A stretch of DNA of 63,819 nt, the filler included, from Pelomyxa schiedti (lineage: Eukaryota; Protista; Evosea), in NCBI GenBank assembly GCA_020536535.1. It is 9 parts of 9 records of this genome, joined end to end, with 100 filler letters (N's around TTAATTAATTAA, not from the genome) between each part and the next. Parts side by side here need not be neighbours in the genome. Positions count along the whole stretch, not along the records: positions 21,626 to 47,946 come from JAHLWZ010000119.1; 8 more parts are not named here. The stretch is one strand, 5' to 3'. Numbering within the stretch: the first letter of the stretch is position 1; each line of letters begins with the position of its first letter. The translations under genes were made by a program, and so were the position numbers. A model generated the notes under the pieces. It had not been told where the DNA came from. It saw only the letters and a program-made list of their open reading frames with translations, and searched no databases. This document shows, in pieces, positions 32,363-46,347 of the stretch.

Positions 32363-32408
32363 TCGTTGTTCTTCCTAGAATTTCAAAATTCTCGGAATCC
32401 CGGTAGTG

Positions 32409-33878
32409 ATGGCGTCTGTTGGCAACAACAAGGTGGGGCGGCAGCACAAGCGGCGGCAGCCCGCGGCGGTGTCGGTGGCCGCGATGGTCAGCGCGGCCGA
32501 CCAGTTCGCGGCGCTGATGGCGTCGTCCCTGCCGCGGTGCGGGGCGCTCAGCCCGGCCCGCCCCGTGTGCTGCGCCGCGCCGCTGGCCCGCCACCTCTGG
32601 TGCGAGTGGGTGGCCGGCCCCCGCGTCGCGGCGGAGGTCACCCTGGTCGTCGCGAACAAGCACAACGGAGCGGTGTGGGGGGACGCCCCGGCGTGGCAGT
32701 CGGTCGCGTTCGGCGTCTCGCGCGCCACGCTGGGCGTCACGCGCGGCGGGCGCGTGGGCGCCTCGGGCGTCTTCGTCGGGTGGGCGGCGCCCGGCGTCTC
32801 GCTGCAGAGGAGCGTGCATCGCGCCGTTTCGCTGCACCTGCGGAGGGAAAAGAGCATGACCACGGTATCTGGTGGTGGGAGATATGGAGCTGACCATCAT
32901 AATCATGTTAATGATGATTATGTTGGTGGTGGTGGCGATGGTGGAGATGGGGGAGGAGGAGGAGGAGGAATGGGGAGTGGGGGTCAGGATGGGGGTGTGC
33001 TGGTTAGCAGGGACGAGGTTCTGTGCGACGCGGTGAATTCGAAGTGGTGGGTCACATGTGAGAGGGCCGTCGTAAGAGACGAAGGAAAAAGAGGAACTGC
33101 AAGCAGTAACAGCAACGGCGTCACACTGGCAATCACTGGAATTCACTGCTACACCGCTGCTACTGCTACTACTGGTGCTGCAGTGACTGTACCGTGCGTG
33201 GCTGGGATTGTCGTTCCGTGGGTGACCGCTGTGGCACCAAACAGTCGCCTGTTCCTGAACAACGTCTTTCCAGACGAGGCACTGTTGACTCTCAACCTTT
33301 CCACCCAGGAGATTTTCCTCACTCTGTTTGATGTCAATCAGACAGCAGAATCAAGGAGAATTTCAGTGCTGGCCCAGACCTCCATGGGAACAAGGGGAAG
33401 GAAGATTGGTGATTCTCCTTTGTCGGCTGCGCCATCTTTCCAAGGCGTGCCTGTTACAGCACTGGTTTTGCGGAGGGAGAAGACTGATGGCTCTATTGTC
33501 TTCGTCTTGAAGCCATCAGCAGGCGCAGTATTCCAGGTTGAGGCCGCAACAGGTGAGACAAAGGTGCTGTCAACGAGGTGCACAGACCTGTCACAGCTGA
33601 GTGAGACCATGTTCTGCATTGGGAGTACCTATGGCTGCGAGAAGTCCTACGAACTGTGGGACTGCCACAACGTGGAGCAACCAGTGAGGTGCTTCCAAAG
33701 CGGTGACAACTTCGACCAGGTCATTGGCGGCTGTGGATTCCTGTTTGCAGTGAGCGAGAGGGACAGGAAGATACACGTGATTGACGCGTCGTCAGGGCTG
33801 GCTGCCATGATCACCCTCGATGTGCTGTTTGCCTCCACGTTTTACATCATCCAGCAATCCTCCATCTTCATCTCATGA
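32409..33878 (+). CDS. Expanded family 1 member, intronless (~490 aa)
   Basis: ADQFAALMASSLPRCGALSPAR..W.EWV..FGVSRATLGV..NSKWWV..FDVNQT..ELWDCHN..FDQVIGGCGFLF. Confidence 0.85.
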   Translation: MASVGNNKVGRQHKRRQPAAVSVAAMVSAADQFAALMASSLPRCGALSPARPVCCAAPLARHLWCEWVAGPRVAAEVTLVVANKHNGAVWGDAPAWQSVAFGVSRATLGVTRGGRVGASGVFVGWAAPGVSLQRSVHRAVSLHLRREKSMTTVSGGGRYGADHHNHVNDDYVGGGGDGGDGGGGGGGMGSGGQDGGVLVSRDEVLCDAVNSKWWVTCERAVVRDEGKRGTASSNSNGVTLAITGIHCYTAATATTGAAVTVPCVAGIVVPWVTAVAPNSRLFLNNVFPDEALLTLNLSTQEIFLTLFDVNQTAESRRISVLAQTSMGTRGRKIGDSPLSAAPSFQGVPVTALVLRREKTDGSIVFVLKPSAGAVFQVEAATGETKVLSTRCTDLSQLSETMFCIGSTYGCEKSYELWDCHNVEQPVRCFQSGDNFDQVIGGCGFLFAVSERDRKIHVIDASSGLAAMITLDVLFASTFYIIQQSSIFIS

Positions 33879-36445: not shown

Positions 36446-38678
36446 ATGACAACGGACGAGGCACGGGCGACCATCAGGCACATTCTGGAGACTTCGAGGG
36501 TTGTGTGGGACAACGTGGTGGCCCCAGGGTGGCTCGAAACCTCCTCCTCGCCGTTGCTCCCGCAGGACGGCGAGGAGGGCGGGTCGATGGGCGCGGACGT
36601 GTTCCGGGCTGCCGGGGCCATGTTCCCCCTCGTGGCCCTCGCCTGCTCCCGCGTCCTGCGCCGCGCCCGCGAGGAGGGCCGCTCGCACTACTGCGCCCTG
36701 TGGGCCGCCGGCATGGCCGGCAGCGGGGCGTGCGTCTCGTGGATCATCGCGCACCACACGCGGGAGTCGCACCGCGGCGCCCGCAGGCCCCGCACCAGCA
36801 CGGTCAAGGAGGCGGGGTGGGTGCTGTGCGGGCTGTGCGACTCGGGCAACGTGGCCGCCGCTCGCTCCTTGTTCGGCGGAGGCGGAGGCGAGGGAGATCA
36901 CATGAGCGGGGGGGGCACCTTCCCTTGGTCATTGTGGGATGGGTACCGGGTGCCCGAGTGGTCCCCGGGTTTGGCCGGAACGGTGGCTCCGCCAAACACA
37001 GTCAGAAGTTCCGAGGCTGATGCGAGTGAACTGAGGACCGATGTGATGGAGTATGTGAAGTCAGGGCGTGCCGCGGGCGGGCGTGGGTGGAGGAACCTCG
37101 AGTCTGTGAAGTGGCTTATGTCTGCATTGCGTGTTGGGGCTGGCGACTCTTGGGTCTTTATGGCGGCCCTGAGATTGGCTCTCTGGTATGGCGCGACGGA
37201 TATCATGAAGTGGTTGGAGAGTGAGTTTAATTTGGTGACAAAGTTGCCTGAGGTGAGCCGAATCCAGTTGATTACAACGTGTGCTTCTGGTCACGCACCA
37301 GAAAATGTGAAGTGGTTTGCTGAGACCTTCCCGACCCTTCCTACTGGAGGTCACCTGTTGTCAACTGTGATGAGGAATGAACACAGCACTTTGGAGCAGT
37401 GCCAATGGCTGAGAAGCCATTTTCCAGAAGAGGAAATTAGCGACTTTACCTTGTCCGCAATAAGAAGTTCAAATATTGGAAAGTGGGCACTTTCATCTTT
37501 TCCCATTGAGCCAGGTGAAGGCACTCTGAACAGAATGTGCCGTTACATTCAGGACACGAGCTTCGTGGAGTGGCTCATCACTGAACGGAACTTCACCCCA
37601 ACAGCTGTCACGTTTGCTTGTGTTTGCTCCACAAGCCAAGGTGGATGCACTCTTCCACGGTGGCTCTCAACCAAAGTGAAACTGGTACCTGCTGATATCC
37701 AGGTCTCCCTTGAACGCGCCCTGAGCTGGAACAACACTGCAATTGCAGACTGGCTGGAGAGCACTTTCAGTGTCATGGGAGCTGTGACTGCAAGTGCTGA
37801 GGCTACTGCTGCCATGCTTGTTCAATTGTCCCAGGAGAGAGGTGATTTCACGAACAAGGTGGATGGACTGCACTGGTTCCTTCAGCACATCCCACATCCC
37901 GAGAAAATCCCTGCGGCTTCAGTCCACAAGGCAATTTCAGGGGCCCTGAAGTATGATCGTGTTAACTTTGCACTTCAGCTTCTGGAGGTGTTCCCCAAGT
38001 ACAAGCCGCAGGAAGGGGACACAGAGCTGCTGGAGTCTATTTTGAACGCTTTACTGAGAGGGAGTTATGTAAAACTGCAACGTCTGATGGCCTTGTTTGG
38101 ATTCTCGTTATTCACCAGAGAGATGGTCGCAACGTCAATGACCCGTCCAGCATTTCGGCCCTCTTCAGGCAAATGCGTGAAGTGGGCAATCACACAGTTC
38201 CGCCTGGAAGGGACACACATAAAACATAATCACAACAGGCTTCTCTTCAGCCTTATCCTGAGAAAGAAACCGAGTTGCGCAGAATGGCTCATTGATTCCT
38301 TTGGAATCACTCATGATGAGGTCTGTATGGTGCCAACACACCAAAATCCATTAGTAACTTCTGAACATCCCCAAATAGGTCATTGATATGTTCAGACACT
38401 TTCTGAGTTCCCGGGGACACTACTTTGTCATGGACCTGCAGACATGGAAGATGATCCTGCGCAAATTCCCAAGGATAGACGCCGATGTGATTCGCAGGCA
38501 CTTGATGCGGGTTGCTGTCATTTCTCCATCAATTGCCACGTTCACAATGAACCAATGCGGCATCACAATCGAGGAGATTCGCCACCAGTTCGATAGACTT
38601 GGACACTTTGAAAACCCAGAACACAGGGCACGGCTCACAACTGAGCTCCGAATGTGGCTTGGCTTGACTGGAGGGTAA
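36446..38678 (+). CDS. Expanded family 2 member: conserved N-terminal motif plus degenerate ankyrin-like repeats; single 3' intron 38321-38378
   Basis: SRVVWDNVVAPGW..AAGAMFPLVALAC; repeated helix units ending in WL/WF (LCGLCDSGNVAAARSL, ALWYGATDIMKWL, ALSWNNTAIADWL); splice ITHDE|VIDMF joins the ORF at 38388-38678. Confidence 0.8.
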
Positions 38679-39210
38679 GAAACTGGAAAACAAACGAATA
38701 AAAAAAACACCTATCCGGTATCAAGTTGGGTGATAAAATAATCAACACACTCTGCCCCTTAAATTTTCTCTTTCAACCTAATTAAATAGATTCGTCTCCT
38801 ACAGAGCACCGGGGTTTATTTTATTCTCCCAGCTTGAGTAGCACGCACTTCCACACTTTTTTTAACAGTAAGTCTTTGTGGCAACTCGTGTGGAAGACGT
38901 TCCTTGTCCGATTTTCGTTCGCCACTACGAAGAGTACGCTATGTTTACCGCCGTAATACGCGTCCCTGCTCTATGACGTCTACACCTGCCGAGTTAGGGT
39001 TCAGGTTGTCACTCAGCACTGTGAAATTCCCTCTTAACCTGACCCGTAACGCGAAAATGATTGGTGCAAAAAACTTTGAGGGATGCAGGGAATTGCAACA
39101 TCTCGACAAACGGTATAAACACAAAAAAAAACAACAAGTGCCTTCCACAGAGTGGTGTCTCCCCCCCCCCACCAAACAAGTTTTACACTCGAATTTAACT
39201 TCCGAAGAAA

Positions 39211-40521
39211 GTGCTTTCGCCGGCACGAGCAAGCGGCACCACTCCACCTGCTCGACAAGGAACGACAGCGGACTGCCATGCCGCAGCACCCACAACTCCA
39301 AATGCTCCAACCTCCCAAACGCCGGTGACACCTTCACCAGTACCAGCTCAAGGAACAACAGCAACGGCAACGGTGGTGACGATGACGACTACGACGACGG
39401 CCACACCGTCACCTCCAACAAGCATGCCGGCAGTAGTGGAGCCGTCAGCGTACACGAAGCTGAAAAGGTTCATGGAAGGGGTGGCACGTAGCTGCATCGA
39501 CAGGGAAGAGGCGACAATTGTTGGATTGGTTGCACTCTTGATGGGCGAGCACTGCTTGTTTCTTGGCCCGTCGGGCACGGCCAAGAGCATGCTGGCACAC
39601 ACAATGCTGCGGTACGGGTGCAATATGAGCCCGAATAGATATTTTGAACTCGCACTGCATGCTGGAACCTCCATGAATGATATTGTCGGACCTGTTGATC
39701 TTGTGGTACTGAACGGAGACAAGAAAGCTATACGCGACAGAAGGAATCACATTTACGTAGATGAGTGTGTAACGGCTTTCTTGGATGAGATATTCAAGGC
39801 ACCTCCATCGACCCTCACAGTTCTACTTTCACTCCTGAACAAGGACGACTTCAATGACGGGGAGAAAATGGTTAAATCGCACTTACACACCGTTTTCTCC
39901 GCCAGCAAGGAGATTCCGCTGGAGTCGAACCAAGGAGCCCTCCTTGATAGATTTTTCCTGCGAGTATTTGTTGATGGGATATCCGAGAAGCGTATTCTGT
40001 ACAGCTTTCACCAGAGTCCGCCAGCGGAATTCCCGGAACCTAGGATGGACTTCCCCTTTGTGAGAGACTTTGCCGATGCAGCCAAGGAAGCTATCCCCGA
40101 CCCGTTCCCGGAGCAGATGCAAGACCTTCTGAGCGACTTTGATGAGTTTGTTGTTGGACTTGAGCCAGAGAAGCACCAAGTGGATGACATGGCAGAAACC
40201 CACGGTGGTTCTTTGCTCACTGACCGCAGCCGCGTGAAGCTCGGCTGCATGGCACAAGTCATTGCACATGCACACAATCGCCAAAAAGTGCACCCCTACG
40301 ACCTGTACATGTTTGTCTACGCTGTTTGGAAGACAAAGGAGCAATTCACGAAAGTCTCCAACTGGATGATCAACCGCCTTCGCCAAATCCCACTAGATTT
40401 CGCAGTCCTGCAGGACCACCTCTTCATCCCGCAAAGAGTGAAGGATCGCCTGCTGGAGGCACCCAACAGTCCGCAGTCAACTGCTGACGTGGTCAGCACT
40501 CTTTTCCTTTCTAGAAGATGA
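39211..40521 (+). CDS. RavA/MoxR-type AAA+ ATPase domain, intronless; probably the 5' part of a fusion with the downstream kinase; start uncertain
   Basis: IDREEATIVGLVALLMGEHCLFLGPSGTAKS (Walker A), FLDEIFKA (Walker B), SASKE (sensor 1 region), ALLDRFFLRVFV (Arg finger). Confidence 0.85.
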   Translation: MLSPARASGTTPPARQGTTADCHAAAPTTPNAPTSQTPVTPSPVPAQGTTATATVVTMTTTTTATPSPPTSMPAVVEPSAYTKLKRFMEGVARSCIDREEATIVGLVALLMGEHCLFLGPSGTAKSMLAHTMLRYGCNMSPNRYFELALHAGTSMNDIVGPVDLVVLNGDKKAIRDRRNHIYVDECVTAFLDEIFKAPPSTLTVLLSLLNKDDFNDGEKMVKSHLHTVFSASKEIPLESNQGALLDRFFLRVFVDGISEKRILYSFHQSPPAEFPEPRMDFPFVRDFADAAKEAIPDPFPEQMQDLLSDFDEFVVGLEPEKHQVDDMAETHGGSLLTDRSRVKLGCMAQVIAHAHNRQKVHPYDLYMFVYAVWKTKEQFTKVSNWMINRLRQIPLDFAVLQDHLFIPQRVKDRLLEAPNSPQSTADVVSTLFLSRR

Positions 40522-41600
40522 TACTAATGAAAACCAAACAGAGGAATCCACATACAGTGGAACTCATTGAGATTGAGAATTTCAGGGCTGCAGAACTACT
40601 TGGAACAGGCTCAAGTTCAGCAGTTTTCAGGGTGCAAAACCGCAATTTCCACGATGGAGACATGGTGATCAAGGTTCTGTTCAACTGGGAGAACGCACAA
40701 CAAGTTCAACAGGCAATACCAGAGTGTGGAATGCTCTCCTTACTTCCACCCCACGAAAATGTGATCAACCCTCTTGGCTCCTTTGTGATCCCTTAGTATG
40801 TCTCCCTTCCCACTGAAGCACTCAACAAACACTTGCAGCCTACCGGCCGAGTTTGCAGAGAAAATACCACTTGACCAGCCATTCTTCAAAGAACTGTGCA
40901 ACAACAAGTCACTTGCCATCCTCATGCCCCATTGTGGTTTCACTTTACCATCATTTTTCTCTTCCTTGCTCATGAGGTGCTCCAAAGCATTGCTGATCGA
41001 CAATTTCCAGAGTCTGTTCGTTCAAGGGCTCCAAGCAATCCACCACATTGAGTCACATTTTGTTGTTCACAGGTTGTACTGCTTCCCCTTCCACACTCAA
41101 ACCAACTCAAAAAACACAGGGACATCAAAGGGGACAACGTTCTTGTTGACCCAGAGAGTGGCAAGCTGACCCTGGTTGATTTTGGTGAGGCTCAGCACTG
41201 CCCAAACCTTCAAATGGTTTTAAGTGCAACAACACAAGCATGGGGAAATGCAGGCACAATTCCCCCCGAGCTGAGCGCACTCCTCAAGAGTGTCACAAGG
41301 GGAACCGGCAGCAGTGGGGCAGTGTTCTCATACTCAAAGTGTGACTCTTTTGCCCTTGCCCTCACTTTCTACAATGTTCTTCTGCCACCTGAGCACAAGT
41401 TCATTGGGAGTGTGTTGAACCATGACATGAGTGTGTTCAGCACCCACTCACTCCTCAGTGAGTTCCCTTTCTCTGTCTTTTCCTCTCCCATGGTGGAACC
41501 TCCATCAGAGTTAATCCAGCATGTGATGATTGGGATGATGAATCCTGATAAGGGTGCCAGGCTCCCTGCTGCTGATGCCATCGAATTACTCACATCCTGA
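40518..41600 (+). CDS. Ser/Thr protein kinase domain with two introns
   Basis: LGTGSSSAV, MVIK, HENVI, spliced HR|DIKGDN, VDFGE, GNAGTIPPE, SKCDSFAL. Confidence 0.85.
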
Positions 41601-41685: not shown

Positions 41686-43876
41686 ATGAGCGGGAGAACA
41701 ACCTCCAATACTACTACATCCACTGCTTCTTCGAGTGGTGGTGGTGCGGCGCAGACGTGCGATATGGAGGGAACGCATGGTGTTGTTGTTAGGAGTGCAG
41801 GTCCCGTGGCGCCAACGTCGACGTCGACGGCAACGTCGTCGCCCGCGTCGGCGGTTTTTATAGCCGCGTGCCGGGGTGAGGTTGCCGTTCCTTCTTTTTG
41901 TTTTTTCTTTTCGCTTTTCGCTTTCAGTTGATGGTTTCACGAACACCTCTTGTAGCGGTATCCTGGGGATGCACAGGTGGGCACTGAGTTCTTACCGCAT
42001 AAGGCGTTGCCAATCACATGGTTCTCGTATGGGCTGGATTGGCTTGGTTGGACAGCAAGCTGGATATGGAAGAACCCAATATTCCAGGCTGACGATATCC
42101 GAAGGGTGCGCGCTTTTTTGCAATCTCATTCATTTCATATGACCTCACAATACAATAAAGATTGTCAGAGAGATGTGTGCATGCCATTCACCAATGCTTG
42201 GAGATATGTCTCCGGCTTTGCGAGCTTGGGACACGTGGTTGAGCAACTTTGATCTCTCACACGTTCCTTATGTATATGCTCTTCATACTTTGCAGAGGTA
42301 ACTTGTCCCACAGAATGCTCACTTCATGGTAAACGGGACAATGCACGGACTGGCTGAAGCAGGACTGAAGATTTGCCGATACACCGCGGACCATCCTGAG
42401 CTATCTCAGAAACCTCTAAATCCCATCATGTTCATTTCTGGTCTTCCACGGGCTGGAACAACCATCCTTCACAAGTATATATTTCTTTTCAGTACTAGTT
42501 CCATCAGTTATACTCTTACCGTGATTCAGTTTGGTAGCCTCAGATCCCCGCAATCGCGGCATTCATTTGTTTGAGATGCACCATTTGGTCAGCCCAACAC
42601 CTCCCGCCAAGTCAAAGGAGGCTCTGTTAAATGATCCTAGAATAGAGGAGGTTGTCTTCATTATCAAATCCTCTCTCCAACCATAAATTCAGTGCAAGAA
42701 ACACTTCTTTGGACTTCATCGATTCATTAAGGACTACTGGTACAGAGTCACATTTTATTTTTTCTTTCCTCACCAAAGCGTTTTGTTTGTGTCAGGCCAG
42801 CTGTGGCAGAGTCTCACTTCACAGGACCTGAATCAATTGGTGTGTTTTAGTTTCTTGTGTGCTCCTTAACTTTTTTTTTTAAGATGAAGAAAACTATATT
42901 ATGTTGTTCTCCTCCAGTTTATCCGTTTTTTCACTTAATATTCACCAAAAGGAGTTGGATGGGTCTTTTCTTCATTCATGGCATTTTTGCTGGTGACGCC
43001 TACATGGATTATTACCTGGAACCTGACAAGAACTTCTTGTACAGGGTGTTGAGGACTTTCCTACAAATACTCAATTCAGTATGTCTGGTTATTCAAGAAG
43101 TCAATTTTTGTTCTTAACCTTTGTTATTTTAAGGGTTTTGCGCCGGAAAATTTGTGGATATATAAGTGCCCTGCACACAACCTCTGGCTGGATGCCTTGT
43201 TGCAGGAAATTCCCGATGCACGTGTTCTCTTCATCCATCGCAACCCTGCAGAAACTATTCCCTCTTGGGCAGCTTTGCAAGAAGTATCCCTTTCAACACA
43301 TATGAAGTTCATTTTTTTTATTTATTCATTACAATACTGAGTAGGTTATGATGAGCCACTTTTATCATGATGGGAAATGGAACCGTCGAGATATTGCCAA
43401 GAGTTCATTGAGAATGTGGCGGACTGCAGCCTACAGAGGCATGGAGTGGCAGCAACGGACCGACCCAAAGCATTGGTACAACATCTTTTACAAAGGTGCG
43501 AAATCCACCTTGTTCTTTCTTCCAAAGAGACTGAGAAGCATGAAGATTTCCTTGCTGATCCAACTGGATGCCTTGAGAAAGCCTATGAACACTTTGGAAT
43601 TCCATATACGTGTGTGATGTTGATATTTCTGTTTTTATTGCCCCTCAACACCTCCTGAAGGGAAGAGGCAAGAACAGCAATGAAAGCGTGGCTCGCAGCT
43701 AACCCACAAGGCAAGCATGGCAGGAGGCACTACACTCCTGAAATGTACGGAATGACAACAGCAAGTATGTATCCGCAATTCCGGTTTTCACCAATGCAAT
43801 AAAAACGCAAACTCCAGGTCTTGAAGAAGCATTTGGAGAGTATTTGAACCGCCATTGTTACCCCGGAAGTCACTAA
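41686..43876 (+). CDS. P-loop sulfotransferase (Sulfotransfer_3 / actinobacterial Stf-like), multi-exon
   Basis: FISGLPRAGTTILH (5'-PSB loop), WIYKCPAH, LFIHRNPAETIPSW (3'-PB), NPQGKHGRRHYTPEMYG. Confidence 0.85.
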
Positions 43877-44211: not shown

Positions 44212-45444
44212 TTACAAGACCGAATCCTGGGGGTGTATCAACGCAGGCATTGCCAGAGAAAATGCAGCAACAAGACATCCCGCAAAGGGCTCAATCACCG
44301 TCACAGAGTGCTTAACAACCACAAACAAGAAGCCACTGCCAGCCACAACTTGATCGAAGTTATCGTCCGGGTTGATTGCCCTCAGTGGTTGGTCAATGTT
44401 GTTGCAGTCCCACAGTTCGTATGACCTGTATTTTTCGTGCCAAATGCAGAACACTGAGGATGAGACTTGTGTGAGGTTATTGGGCTCTGAGTAGCTGTGT
44501 TCCTCTTTCTCAGTGATCTGTCTGATTCCCCCTGTTCTGGGGTCAATTGCAAACACCTCACAAAGAAATGTCTGTGCAATAAAAACCATATCAAAGGTCT
44601 TCCTTCTCATGACAAGAACAACCCCAAATGTCAGTCTGTGTCCCGACAGGGGGAGCATTCCAGTTGACGCAAGAACGGCAAGTTTCTTTGACTGGACAGT
44701 CTTCCGAACATCAAACAGAGTCAGAACAATGTGGCTGTGATTGCGCGCTGCCACAACAGCCTCATCAGGCACAGTCTTGCTCAGGAAGACACCAGCCAGA
44801 CTGTGCAGTATGTCACTCCCCGGAATGCGGAACTCCAGAGGCTCTACCGGCTTCTCCTGTGGGCATTGTGGTAGTTCCCAGATCATCACGGTTTCGTGGT
44901 CACTTCCTGGTGCTGGGCTTCTGGCGTTGAGGAGCCACATGGAATTTGCGGCCGCGAAAAAAGGGCTGCGTTCGGATTCAGCAAAGGTGCAAACAAAAGG
45001 CTGCGCCTGGTTTCCGAGGTCTCTGCATTCGTTGCGGCTGCTGATTTGAAGGTCCAACGACCTCAGGGCATACCCATTCCCATCTGGGACCAGGACCTGT
45101 TCCGGGGCCACGCACTTGACGCGATGCAGCAAGTCGATGCCTTGTAGGTAAGTGACACCAAGCAGACGCCTGGACAACCCAATGTGCACAGTGCTCGGCG
45201 TGCTGTCATCGGTGAAATCCGCCGACTCAAGATACAGAACGAAGGCGGACGCGCCGGCCAGGACAATTTCGCTCCAGAAGTGTGACATGAGCGGCGCGCT
45301 GGCGGACATGATTCGGGCCGGGCTGTGGGCCCCGCACCGCGGGTGCGACGACATCAACAGGGCCGCGACCTGCCAACTGGCTAATTGAAGGTGAGCCACC
45401 TCGCGTATGCGCGGCGTTTGCCGTTGCGGCTGTGTTGTCGACAT
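44212..45444 (-). CDS. Expanded family 1 member, intronless (410 aa)
   Basis: WQVAALLMSSHPRCGAHSPAR..IGLSRRLLGV..NSMW..FDVRKT..ELWDCNN..FDQVVAGSGFLF. Confidence 0.85.
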   Translation of the reverse strand: MSTTQPQRQTPRIREVAHLQLASWQVAALLMSSHPRCGAHSPARIMSASAPLMSHFWSEIVLAGASAFVLYLESADFTDDSTPSTVHIGLSRRLLGVTYLQGIDLLHRVKCVAPEQVLVPDGNGYALRSLDLQISSRNECRDLGNQAQPFVCTFAESERSPFFAAANSMWLLNARSPAPGSDHETVMIWELPQCPQEKPVEPLEFRIPGSDILHSLAGVFLSKTVPDEAVVAARNHSHIVLTLFDVRKTVQSKKLAVLASTGMLPLSGHRLTFGVVLVMRRKTFDMVFIAQTFLCEVFAIDPRTGGIRQITEKEEHSYSEPNNLTQVSSSVFCIWHEKYRSYELWDCNNIDQPLRAINPDDNFDQVVAGSGFLFVVVKHSVTVIEPFAGCLVAAFSLAMPALIHPQDSVL

Positions 45445-45481
45445 TGGTCGGGGTTGTTGTTGTTGCGAGTGTAACGGTTCG

Positions 45482-45568
45482 TCAAGCAGTGATTAGAACT
45501 GTACTGCACAGTTCGACTGTTGTATGTAGTTCTAAGTGTGGTTCTAATCACTGATGGATTTCTGGGAA
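45482..45568. promoter_or_regulatory. Dyad element (13-bp IR CAGTGATTAGAAC / GTTCTAATCACTG); its right half recurs at 30496-30542
   Basis: Arms 45487-45499 and 45541-45553; TGTAGTTCTA..GGTTCTAATCACTG..ATGGATTTCTGGGAA present at both loci, each just upstream of a start codon. Confidence 0.5.
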
Positions 45569-45642
45569 TCCGTTGGTACCCTGCGGGAGATCCAGGCGAC
45601 ACCTAGAACTGATTCCCGTGTCTTATCAAGAGGGCACACTAT

Positions 45643-46347
45643 TGTGGTTGTACTAATCAAAGTAAGAAACACTAAACTCTTGTGTTGTATTCAGGCTTCT
45701 TACTCCTTACTAACAACAACTATCAACACCTCACAGTGGTGGTCACTATCCAAACCCAATCTACCTCCACACAACCTGAGGCAATACTTTCTGGGGGTCT
45801 CTGCAGAAATTAGAACAGGCACTCGTACCACAACAACTACAAGGACAGGAGCATGAGCAGCAGCGCAGCAGGCACTGACAGTGATCAAATTGATACCAAC
45901 ACTGTCCTCCTTGGGGCTCTATTGGAAGTTATCATCAAACAAGGGAATCTACTCGAATTGCTTCTGTTGTGATTAGATCAGACATCTGAGAATGAGCCGA
46001 GACCCAGCCCTGTGGTGATACCAGCAATCATGCCAGGTGCTAGCGTTCCTCCAGCGACGTATCTGATGCTACCACAGACCATTGGGAAGCTCTCCAAGTT
46101 CTCAGGAGCTGGAGCAGAAGACGCCAGGATGTGGTGGCAAGAACTGCTGGCACATAAGGAAATCAATGGCTGGGATGAAGCACTTACCATCAAGCACGCC
46201 ATTGCAAGTATCTCAGGCACAGCCAGGGTTTGGCTCACAGTGGATGTACTCTCTATTACAGAATTGGCAGCATTCAAGAAGGCTTTTTGGGAATACTTTG
46301 TTGGAGAGAACCCCATGCTGGACATTATCAGGACCATGGACTTGTAA
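45643..46347 (+). mobile_element. gag: Ty3/gypsy-like LTR retrotransposon remnant: putative LTR end, PBS and truncated gag
   Basis: ..TCACA-G-TGGTGGTCACTATCC (PBS-like, 45737-45751); gag-like reading from ATG 45853 with an internal TGA, then KFSGAGAEDARMWW..WDEALTIKHAIASISGTARVWL..FKKAFWEYF; no pol seen. Left boundary uncertain. Confidence 0.7.

Follow-up and report, generated by a model that had tools for sequence, protein, structure and literature searches.

In the genome of the anaerobic archamoeba Pelomyxa schiedti (assembly GCA_020536535.1), an AAA+ ATPase of the bacterial RavA/bpMoxR type lies just upstream of a protein kinase, and a spliced complementary DNA (cDNA) contig reads the two as a single protein. 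The locus is on contig JAHLWZ010000119.1, which supplies positions 21626-47946 of the window, the whole stretch of 63,819 nucleotides that was analysed; the positions of this locus are counted along the window. We are highly confident that the ATPase and the kinase form one fused coding unit. With clearly less certainty, although we still favour it over the other explanations, we regard the whole as one ATPase-kinase gene born within Pelomyxa, the product of which would act as a nucleotide-gated ring.

The P. schiedti genome was obtained by single-cell whole-genome amplification and the transcriptomes by Smart-seq2; the genome has about 7.4 introns per gene, with GT-AG borders in 98% (PMC8887013). 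The read data used here are assembled contigs of runs X1 to X4. X4 was the sole run with spliced contigs at the ATPase-kinase locus, apart from one X1 joint in the sulfotransferase gene downstream. The library type of X4 is not given in its record, and its cDNA status was deduced from splicing together with the Smart-seq2 template-switch oligo, which is found on the loose ends of its contigs. The contigs of X2 and X3 probably derive from genomic DNA, because they are unspliced throughout and carry no template-switch oligo. X1, which is recorded as RNA, gave small contigs over parts of both the ATPase and the kinase halves, and three of its contigs downstream are free of introns. The fusion itself is read from one X4 contig (record 28, 2,022 nucleotides), which aligns to 39190-40490, 40541-40795, 40839-41067 and 41115-41351 with three GT..AG joints. 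The fusion intron and the kinase part of the gene are composed as follows:

40492-40541, plus strand: fusion intron of 50 nucleotides, GT..AG, phase 0 (X4 record 28, joint from 40490 to 40541, cut +1).
40542-40795, plus strand: kinase exon 1, with the Gly-rich loop GTGSSS (40602-40619), the VIK Lys (40671-40673) and the alpha-C Glu (Pfam; X4 and X1 contigs).
40796-40838, plus strand: kinase intron 1 of 43 nucleotides, phase 2 (GT..AG joint in X4 cDNA); the split codon, TA plus C, encodes Tyr.
40839-41072, plus strand: kinase exon 2, with the hinge and alpha-D/E, ending in ..VVH-R (cDNA contig, translation).
41073-41119, plus strand: kinase intron 2 of 47 nucleotides, phase 2, interrupting the HRD motif at HR/D (GT..AG joint in X4 cDNA, cut +5); the split codon, AG plus G, encodes Arg.
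41120-41600, plus strand: kinase exon 3, with DIKGDN, DFG (41178-41186), PPE, the subdomain XI Arg and the stop TGA (41598-41600) (Pfam; cDNA to 41351).

The spliced contig has a depth of 21, and the shorter side of the fusion joint measures 255 nucleotides. The intron opens with the donor GTCAGC (40492) and closes with the acceptor CAAACAG (40541, followed by AGG), falling between two codons of the ATPase frame at its start and between two codons of the kinase frame at its end; the spliced product reads ...STADV-RNPHTVELIE... across the joint. Both the old stop of the ATPase frame (TGA, 40519-40521) and the old start of the kinase frame (ATG, 40518-40520), which overlap as ATGA (40518-40521), lie inside this intron, and its length is within the local range of 42-58 nucleotides. 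All spliced junctions are in frame, and the reading frame stays open for ~2.25 kb across three introns. In addition, the transcript-guided GenBank model (36446-41600) places bpMoxR, AAA_5, AAA_lid_8, Pkinase and PK_Tyr_Ser-Thr in one product. A mis-join of paralogues by the assembler is unlikely, because the sequence directly 5' of the joint is unique to the window copy, unlike the paralogue.

A sequence-only reading of this DNA had pointed to the ATGA overlap, which is present, and to a kinase with two introns and intact HRD and DFG motifs, which the 43- and 47-nucleotide joints in cDNA and the translation bear out. It had also proposed that a phase-0 intron fuses the two open reading frames (ORFs). 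The fusion and the phase stand, both in the cDNA contig and in the GenBank model, but the boundaries had to be revised to those used in cDNA. The TAG acceptor put forward at the time (TCTAG before AAG, at 40514) is unused in cDNA, and the 77-nucleotide intron it implied (40438-40514) was rejected; it would delete VKDRLLE...DV, a coding stretch that the paralogue and further members of the family have conserved.

How the fusion arose can be read from the nearest protein, P0001 of P. schiedti (712 residues), in which a helical tail and a LIM domain come after the same ATPase. The window ORF is 76% identical to it over the whole ORF and 80-84% over the ATPase module. The DNA of the two loci is ~90% alike just 5' of 40499 (...GACGTGGTCAGCAC) and unrelated beyond. 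By this comparison the fusion intron spans a rearrangement scar, because the similarity to P0001 ends inside it: the breakpoint between 40499 and 40500 lies seven bases past the donor and 18 nucleotides before the ATG at 40518. Judged in the same way, the kinase was joined on later, by a rearrangement within the Pelomyxa lineage. The gene for ATPase, helical tail and LIM domain would have been duplicated, and one duplicate broken at 40499 and set with its last base 19 nucleotides ahead of a kinase gene's ATG. The donor would have been recruited from the GT of a former Val codon and the acceptor AG from a site eight codons into the former kinase ORF, and the resulting 50-nucleotide intron would take out the former stop and start codons, which merges the two frames. 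The pyrimidine tract and TAG upstream of the ATGA would, in the simplest reading, belong to the kinase-side DNA. The locus would thus give an unusually clean view of the making of a fusion gene, in which scar, old stop and old start all persist within one short intron. Over the ATPase module, synonymous divergence (dS) from P0001 is 0.27 and the ratio of nonsynonymous to synonymous divergence (dN/dS) is 0.38; going by these values, the ATPase-kinase gene is young and constrained, and somewhat relaxed.

The ORF at 39211-40521 (plus strand) matches the Pfam families bpMoxR (PF20030; E 9e-26, 90.6 bits against a cut-off of 27), AAA_5 (PF07728; E 6e-15, 56 bits against 22) and AAA_lid_8 (PF17868; 29.8 bits against 22.8), and it aligns with E. 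coli RavA structures (3nbx; RavA residues 12-211, E 1.6e-19). It does not reach the RavA equivalog NCBIfam NF010054 (78.8 bits against a cut-off of 681), the match being limited to positions 13-192 of 498. The sequence-only reading had called this ORF RavA-like on the basis of its GPSGTAKS, FLDEIFK and ALLDRF motifs, and had named a grouping with midasin or VWA8 as one finding that would speak against its proposal. By its profile and structure-sequence matches the ATPase is of the RavA/bpMoxR kind, and not midasin or VWA8. Its parts are:

39208-39423, plus strand: Thr/Pro/Ala-rich low-complexity N-terminal region (translation), aligning with P0001 residues 48-120 at a dN/dS of 0.36.
39457-39996, plus strand: AAA+ alpha/beta domain of the bpMoxR/RavA type (Pfam PF20030 and PF07728; RavA 3nbx; alignment).
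39565-39588, plus strand: Walker A motif, GPSGTAKS (sequence).
39778-39798, plus strand: Walker B motif, FLDEIFK (sequence).
39907-39909, plus strand: sensor-1 Lys in ASKE, codon AAG (sequence).
39949-39951, plus strand: Arg codon of the Arg finger, ALLDRF (sequence).
40195-40368, plus strand: AAA lid domain, AAA_lid_8 (Pfam PF17868, E 5e-7).
After the lid to ~40440, plus strand: clade-specific DHLFIP helix (alignment).

The alignment with relatives shows the clade motifs GGxLLxDR, HPxDL, WKTxxQ and DHLF, and, as regards the sensor-2 Arg, R268 and R286, which are invariant in it. As the sequence-only reading had noticed, the usual sensor-1 Asn is replaced by Lys. Asn is found in RavA and in all ten aligned relatives (eukaryotes, bacteria and one archaeon), and Lys in the window gene alone; the codon is covered by X2, X3 and X4 contigs and no base difference is listed. 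All other ATPase motifs are intact in the alignment and in the comparison with RavA. PADLOC gave no defence-system match for the ATPase.

The kinase domain is, by its translation, divergent with its catalytic residues kept and a Ser/Thr-type HRDxKxxN loop. The residues present in the exon translations are GTGSSSAV, VIK, IPE, HRDIKGDN, DFG, PPE (for APE) and GAR, and among the precomputed matches of the joined GenBank product, Pkinase and PK_Tyr_Ser-Thr carry no weak mark. Language-model features of exon 3 in the Atlas gave a score of 0.96, with kinase clusters making up 28 of the 30 matches. A PDB sequence search with exon 3 returned sub-threshold kinase matches only (GSK3, ASK1), and no subgroup was assigned.

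Several contigs match only short segments of the kinase (41322-41472, 40656-40698 and 41044-41073) and then diverge, one of them being spliced at the same HR/D position, and the depth of X2 and X3 climbs to 240-300 across 41322-41472. The depth jump and the diverging contigs suggest close kinase paralogues elsewhere in the P. schiedti genome. X3 also contains an inverted joint (40918/41158) of the type usual in amplification chimeras.

A phmmer search run exhaustively over 1.84 billion cluster representatives ranked P0001 first at 650 bits, followed by ten proteins at 130-190 bits and then by the prokaryotic bulk from ~120 bits. The ten include two P. schiedti paralogues (860 residues), proteins of Blastocladiella and Allomyces, and one of EukProt strain PhF-6, which we take to be a prokinetoplastid. 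A maximum-likelihood tree of 47 rows (LG+C20, posterior mean site frequencies) unites 12 eukaryotic sequences from Pelomyxa, Blastocladiomycota and PhF-6 with a support of 100/98, and quick trees agree; being unrooted, it shows no direction of transfer. Strain PhF-6 has been tied to kinetoplastids in two papers. The window gene and P0001 pair at 100/100 on a long stem of 1.7 changes per site, two ankyrin-bearing metagenomic proteins form the sister group, and Dolichomastix falls outside the 12-sequence clade, among prokaryote-like rows. The tree thus indicates that the ATPase is bacterial-type by family and was in eukaryotes long before the kinase fusion, or spread among them. The earlier view that a newly acquired bacterial ATPase had been recruited does not agree with this placement, and a recent bacterial transfer into Pelomyxa was rejected; the fusion came later, within Pelomyxa. 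Judged by their neighbourhoods, the Pelomyxa ATPase genes are nuclear and not contamination, because the paralogue loci hold ordinary eukaryotic genes (kinesin, Kelch, Ras).

Output domains vary across the family, with LIM in P0001, a weak caspase-like region in P0138 and P0140, and, in other eukaryotes, ankyrin repeats or an N-terminal zf-RanBP. No kinase was found in the 52 proteins scanned, i.e. the ten best and the 42 longest among the best 150 cluster representatives. The ATPase-kinase gene is present in one copy and is not conserved in other sampled genomes. Literature searches found no described ATPase-kinase fusion of the MoxR type, in line with the sequence-only reading, which had known of none.

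The two 860-residue paralogues (KAH3757805 and KAH3760538) combine bpMoxR with a C-terminal region that weakly matches Peptidase_C14 (E 1.7e-4 and 2e-3); the match reaches the cut-off in only one of P0138 (L002, 10001-13367) and P0140 (L003, 10001-12873). The position of the catalytic Cys is Phe in one and Pro in the other, and the catalytic His is apparently also substituted in one of them. These C-termini may be pseudo-caspases, which we note as a weak lead. The AlphaFold model of the caspase-like C-terminus is poor (predicted local distance difference test, pLDDT, 49) and Foldseek gave nothing meaningful. The idea that these C-termini are kinases was rejected, as they have no similarity to kinase.

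The fused product would have ~780-805 residues and consist of a short basic N-terminal exon, the Thr/Pro-rich stretch, the bpMoxR/RavA AAA+ module, a linker of ~20 residues and the kinase. MoxR-family ATPases are known to assemble into rings via the Arg finger (Kaur et al. 2020, PMC7159879). As in other MoxR ATPases, the AAA+ module would form a nucleotide-dependent ring, which would cluster the C-terminal kinase domains or hold them on a client, with ATP binding gating trans-activation or substrate access. The change from Asn to Lys at sensor-1 would slow hydrolysis and favour a long-lived ATP-bound switch over a remodelling motor. A nucleotide-gated ring is proposed because MoxR ATPases form rings, the linker between lid and kinase is short and output domains are swapped at the same position. 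As a mechanism, this oligomerisation switch is put forward tentatively, on analogy, and with less confidence than the fused gene itself.

Several known systems resemble parts of this protein. E. coli RavA (3nbx, 6q7l) shares the AAA+ alpha/beta domain, Walker A, Walker B, the Arg finger and the lid type. The window protein is, however, not its orthologue: it has neither the triple-helix nor the LARA domain and no ViaA/VWA neighbour, its sensor-1 residue is Lys and not Asn, and it is eukaryotic, intron-bearing and fused to a kinase. The bacterial MoxR-vWA-beta-propeller ternary systems contain the best-matching Pfam family (PF20030) with its ring-forming Arg finger. In these three-gene operons kinases and caspase-like peptidases are typical effectors and are carried on the separate vWA protein (PMC7159879), whereas in the window gene the effector-like kinase is fused directly to the ATPase and there is no vWA gene within 10 kb; no genome-wide vWA search was made. 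A tblastn search with two vWA-bearing relatives, which is insensitive across introns, picked up nothing but the ATPase, both in the window piece and at three paralogue loci. Over the 12 kb of contig downstream of 36446, the gene calls comprise the 1,519-residue GenBank model, a sulfotransferase and two further proteins that match no Pfam family, and the earlier statement that no VWA gene is adjacent therefore holds. The Pelomyxa paralogue P0001 shares the N-terminal low-complexity region and the acceptor of intron 1; the Pelomyxa paralogues differ in their C-terminal domains, and the kinase and the sensor-1 Lys are found in the window gene only.

An NTPase and a kinase are joined in one chain in ROCO proteins such as LRRK2 (Roc GTPase-COR-kinase) and in STAND-kinase fusions, e.g. 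M. tuberculosis PknK. The proposed logic would be alike, with a nucleotide-dependent oligomerising or switching P-loop module and a kinase in one chain, but their NTPase is a Ras-like GTPase or STAND and not a MoxR-type AAA+, and homology ends at the P-loop fold. Bacterial PrkA joins AAA_PrkA to a kinase-related C-terminal domain that is not of the canonical Hanks type. It resembles the window protein in joining an AAA+ to a kinase-related domain and differs in the AAA+ clade, and the profile search gave no match of the window protein to PrkA models. NTPase-gated kinases (LRRK2/ROCO, STAND kinases) hold a central place as switches in signalling and immunity; if the proposed mechanism is true, fusing a kinase to a MoxR-type AAA+ ring would be a third way, arrived at independently, of building such a switch.

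A still wider idea, which we consider doubtful, is that the window gene belongs to an undescribed eukaryotic family in which the bpMoxR ring would be an assembly switch like the apoptosome or STAND proteins, with swappable effectors (kinase, pseudo-caspase, LIM, ankyrin). Such a family would so far comprise Archamoebae, Blastocladiomycota, a prokinetoplastid and uncultured eukaryotes. If true, the bacterial MoxR-vWA conflict systems would have a eukaryotic counterpart in a single chain, serving signalling in stress, immunity or cell death.

The swapping of effector-like domains in the eukaryotic bpMoxR clade links the bacterial MoxR-vWA systems to eukaryotic domain architectures; the survey of MoxR-vWA systems makes no mention of eukaryotic members (Kaur et al. 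2020, PMC7159879).

Where the gene begins matters for the first alternative, and the 5' region is read as follows:

38843-38972, plus strand: candidate transcript start and 5' leader (X4 contig 38843-39014, preceded by the template-switch oligo ending in GGG).
38973-39137, plus strand: predicted first coding exon, from ATG 38973 or 39057, with the phase-0 donor GTGCCT (frame; parallels P0001 exon 1).
39138-39207, plus strand: predicted intron of 70 nucleotides, its acceptor TCCGAAG, followed by (A/G)AAGTGCTTTCGCC, being shared with the annotated intron 1 of the P0001 locus.

The genomic sequence lacks a GGG at 38843, which marks a template-switch tag and not strand invasion, and we infer a transcript 5' end at this position. 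The frame from 38973 (or 39057) to 39137 is the only ATG-initiated one that joins the acceptor at 39207/39208, which reads TCCGAAG/AAAGTG in the window gene, in phase 0. The sequence-only reading had the ATPase part as intronless; this is correct for 39208-40491, but upstream the homology to the paralogue adds a probable exon and the 70-nucleotide intron. A short upstream ORF lies in the leader (ATG 38941), and its TGA (38974-38976) overlaps the ATG at 38973 as a second ATGA. A C-run in the predicted intron (39160-39170) varies between runs, with one extra C in X3 after 39160, and X2 contigs are one base short at 38700 and again at 38918.

Upstream lies a further gene on the plus strand (36446-38678), with a 646-residue ORF (36446-38386) of ~38-residue repeat modules with a recurring xxWLxxxF motif and no Pfam match. 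In X4 cDNA a 58-nucleotide intron (38321-38378) removes the stop of this ORF, and the protein extends to the TAA at 38676-38678. In GenBank this ORF is spliced onto the ATPase, and the resulting 1,519-residue protein of repeats, AAA+ and kinase would have a STAND-like sensor-NTPase-effector layout. The annotated gene spans 36446-41600, both ORFs are on the same strand ~500 nucleotides apart, a consensus donor (GTAAGA, 38675) overlaps the TAA, and an in-frame path leads from an acceptor at 39004 through 39005-39137 into 39208, giving a reconstruction one codon under 1,519. The X4 contig 38377-38749, however, runs unspliced through this donor and the stop, past an AATAAA at 38697, and ends there, and the template-switch-tagged 5' end follows at 38843. 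Among the contigs no joint was seen across the predicted 5' intron or anywhere in 38.4-39.2 kb. The larger protein would need an intron of ~330 nucleotides, compared with 42-70 for all others at the locus, and P0001 begins with a short ATG exon of its own, its upstream neighbour being on the opposite strand. Moreover, the genome is compact, the next gene beginning 86 nucleotides past the kinase stop, which makes merges by the predictor likely. We therefore hold the larger protein to be unlikely; the GenBank model probably over-merges the upstream gene with the ATPase-kinase gene.

Of comparably low probability is a young, tolerated chimera without integrated function, in which the ATPase decays and the kinase alone, or neither half, matters. 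The dS to the paralogue is only 0.27, the pairwise dN/dS points to looser constraint than is usual in an enzyme, the window copy alone has lost the sensor-1 Asn that is invariant elsewhere, the pair with P0001 sits on a long stem, and the gene is single and without conserved counterparts in the other genomes. On the other hand, the frame has stayed open across all three introns, the remaining ATPase motifs and all kinase motifs are intact, dN/dS is well under 1, RNA-derived contigs lie on both halves (X4 across both, X1 over both), and the intron that heals the scar is precisely spliced. It is very unlikely that the locus encodes two proteins, an ATPase of at least ~436 residues ending at 40519-40521 from an intron-retaining mRNA and a kinase starting at the ATG at 40518, with the spliced fusion as a minor read-through: the overlapping stop and start are intact, the donor is weak and X2 and X3 contigs run unspliced through 40319-41057, but these runs are probably genomic, the sole clear cDNA contig across the site is spliced, the 18 nucleotides between breakpoint and ATG would put a kinase promoter within ATPase coding sequence, an ATG ~1.5 kb into the mRNA is out of reach for a eukaryotic ribosome, and the transcript-guided GenBank model fuses the two.

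Some points weigh against a single ATPase-kinase gene acting as a ring. The evidence for the fusion is a single assembled contig from one run and one sample, and isoform shares and transcript ends cannot be read from contigs. An mRNA retaining the intron would yield an ATPase-only protein, and GTCAGC makes a weaker donor for the fusion intron than the others used nearby (GTATGT, GTTGTA, GTATAT). Searched one by one, the kinase exons all stay under the Pfam gathering cut-off of 31.7 bits for Pkinase (PF00069): exon 1 matches positions 3-67 (E 3.8e-4, 20.4 bits), exon 3 positions 123-258 (E 5.4e-6, 26.4 bits), and exon 2 has no Pfam match. Finally, the sensor-1 Lys and a dN/dS at this level (0.38) are also what an ATPase in decay could show.

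Downstream of the kinase, the sulfotransferase gene (41686-43876, plus strand; 500 residues, Sulfotransfer_3) contains a 42-nucleotide intron (42272-42313) confirmed by an X1 RNA contig. The ATPase-kinase locus is flanked by the paralogous Pelo_1430 (32406-33878, plus strand) and Pelo_1433 (44212-46082, minus strand); an ORF at 44212-45444 (minus strand) is 100% identical to Pelo_1433. The Atlas gave weak beta-propeller-like leads for their family (DCAF17, Beta_prop_At2g24240), and the AlphaFold model of a flanking protein shows three helices followed by an all-beta part at a pLDDT of only 40; with this lead and this model as its only basis, Pelo_1433 as a beta-propeller partner was not upheld. 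The family consists of five proteins, found in P. schiedti only, with an N-terminal HPRCGxxSPAR and a C-terminal ELWDC...DNFDQV motif.

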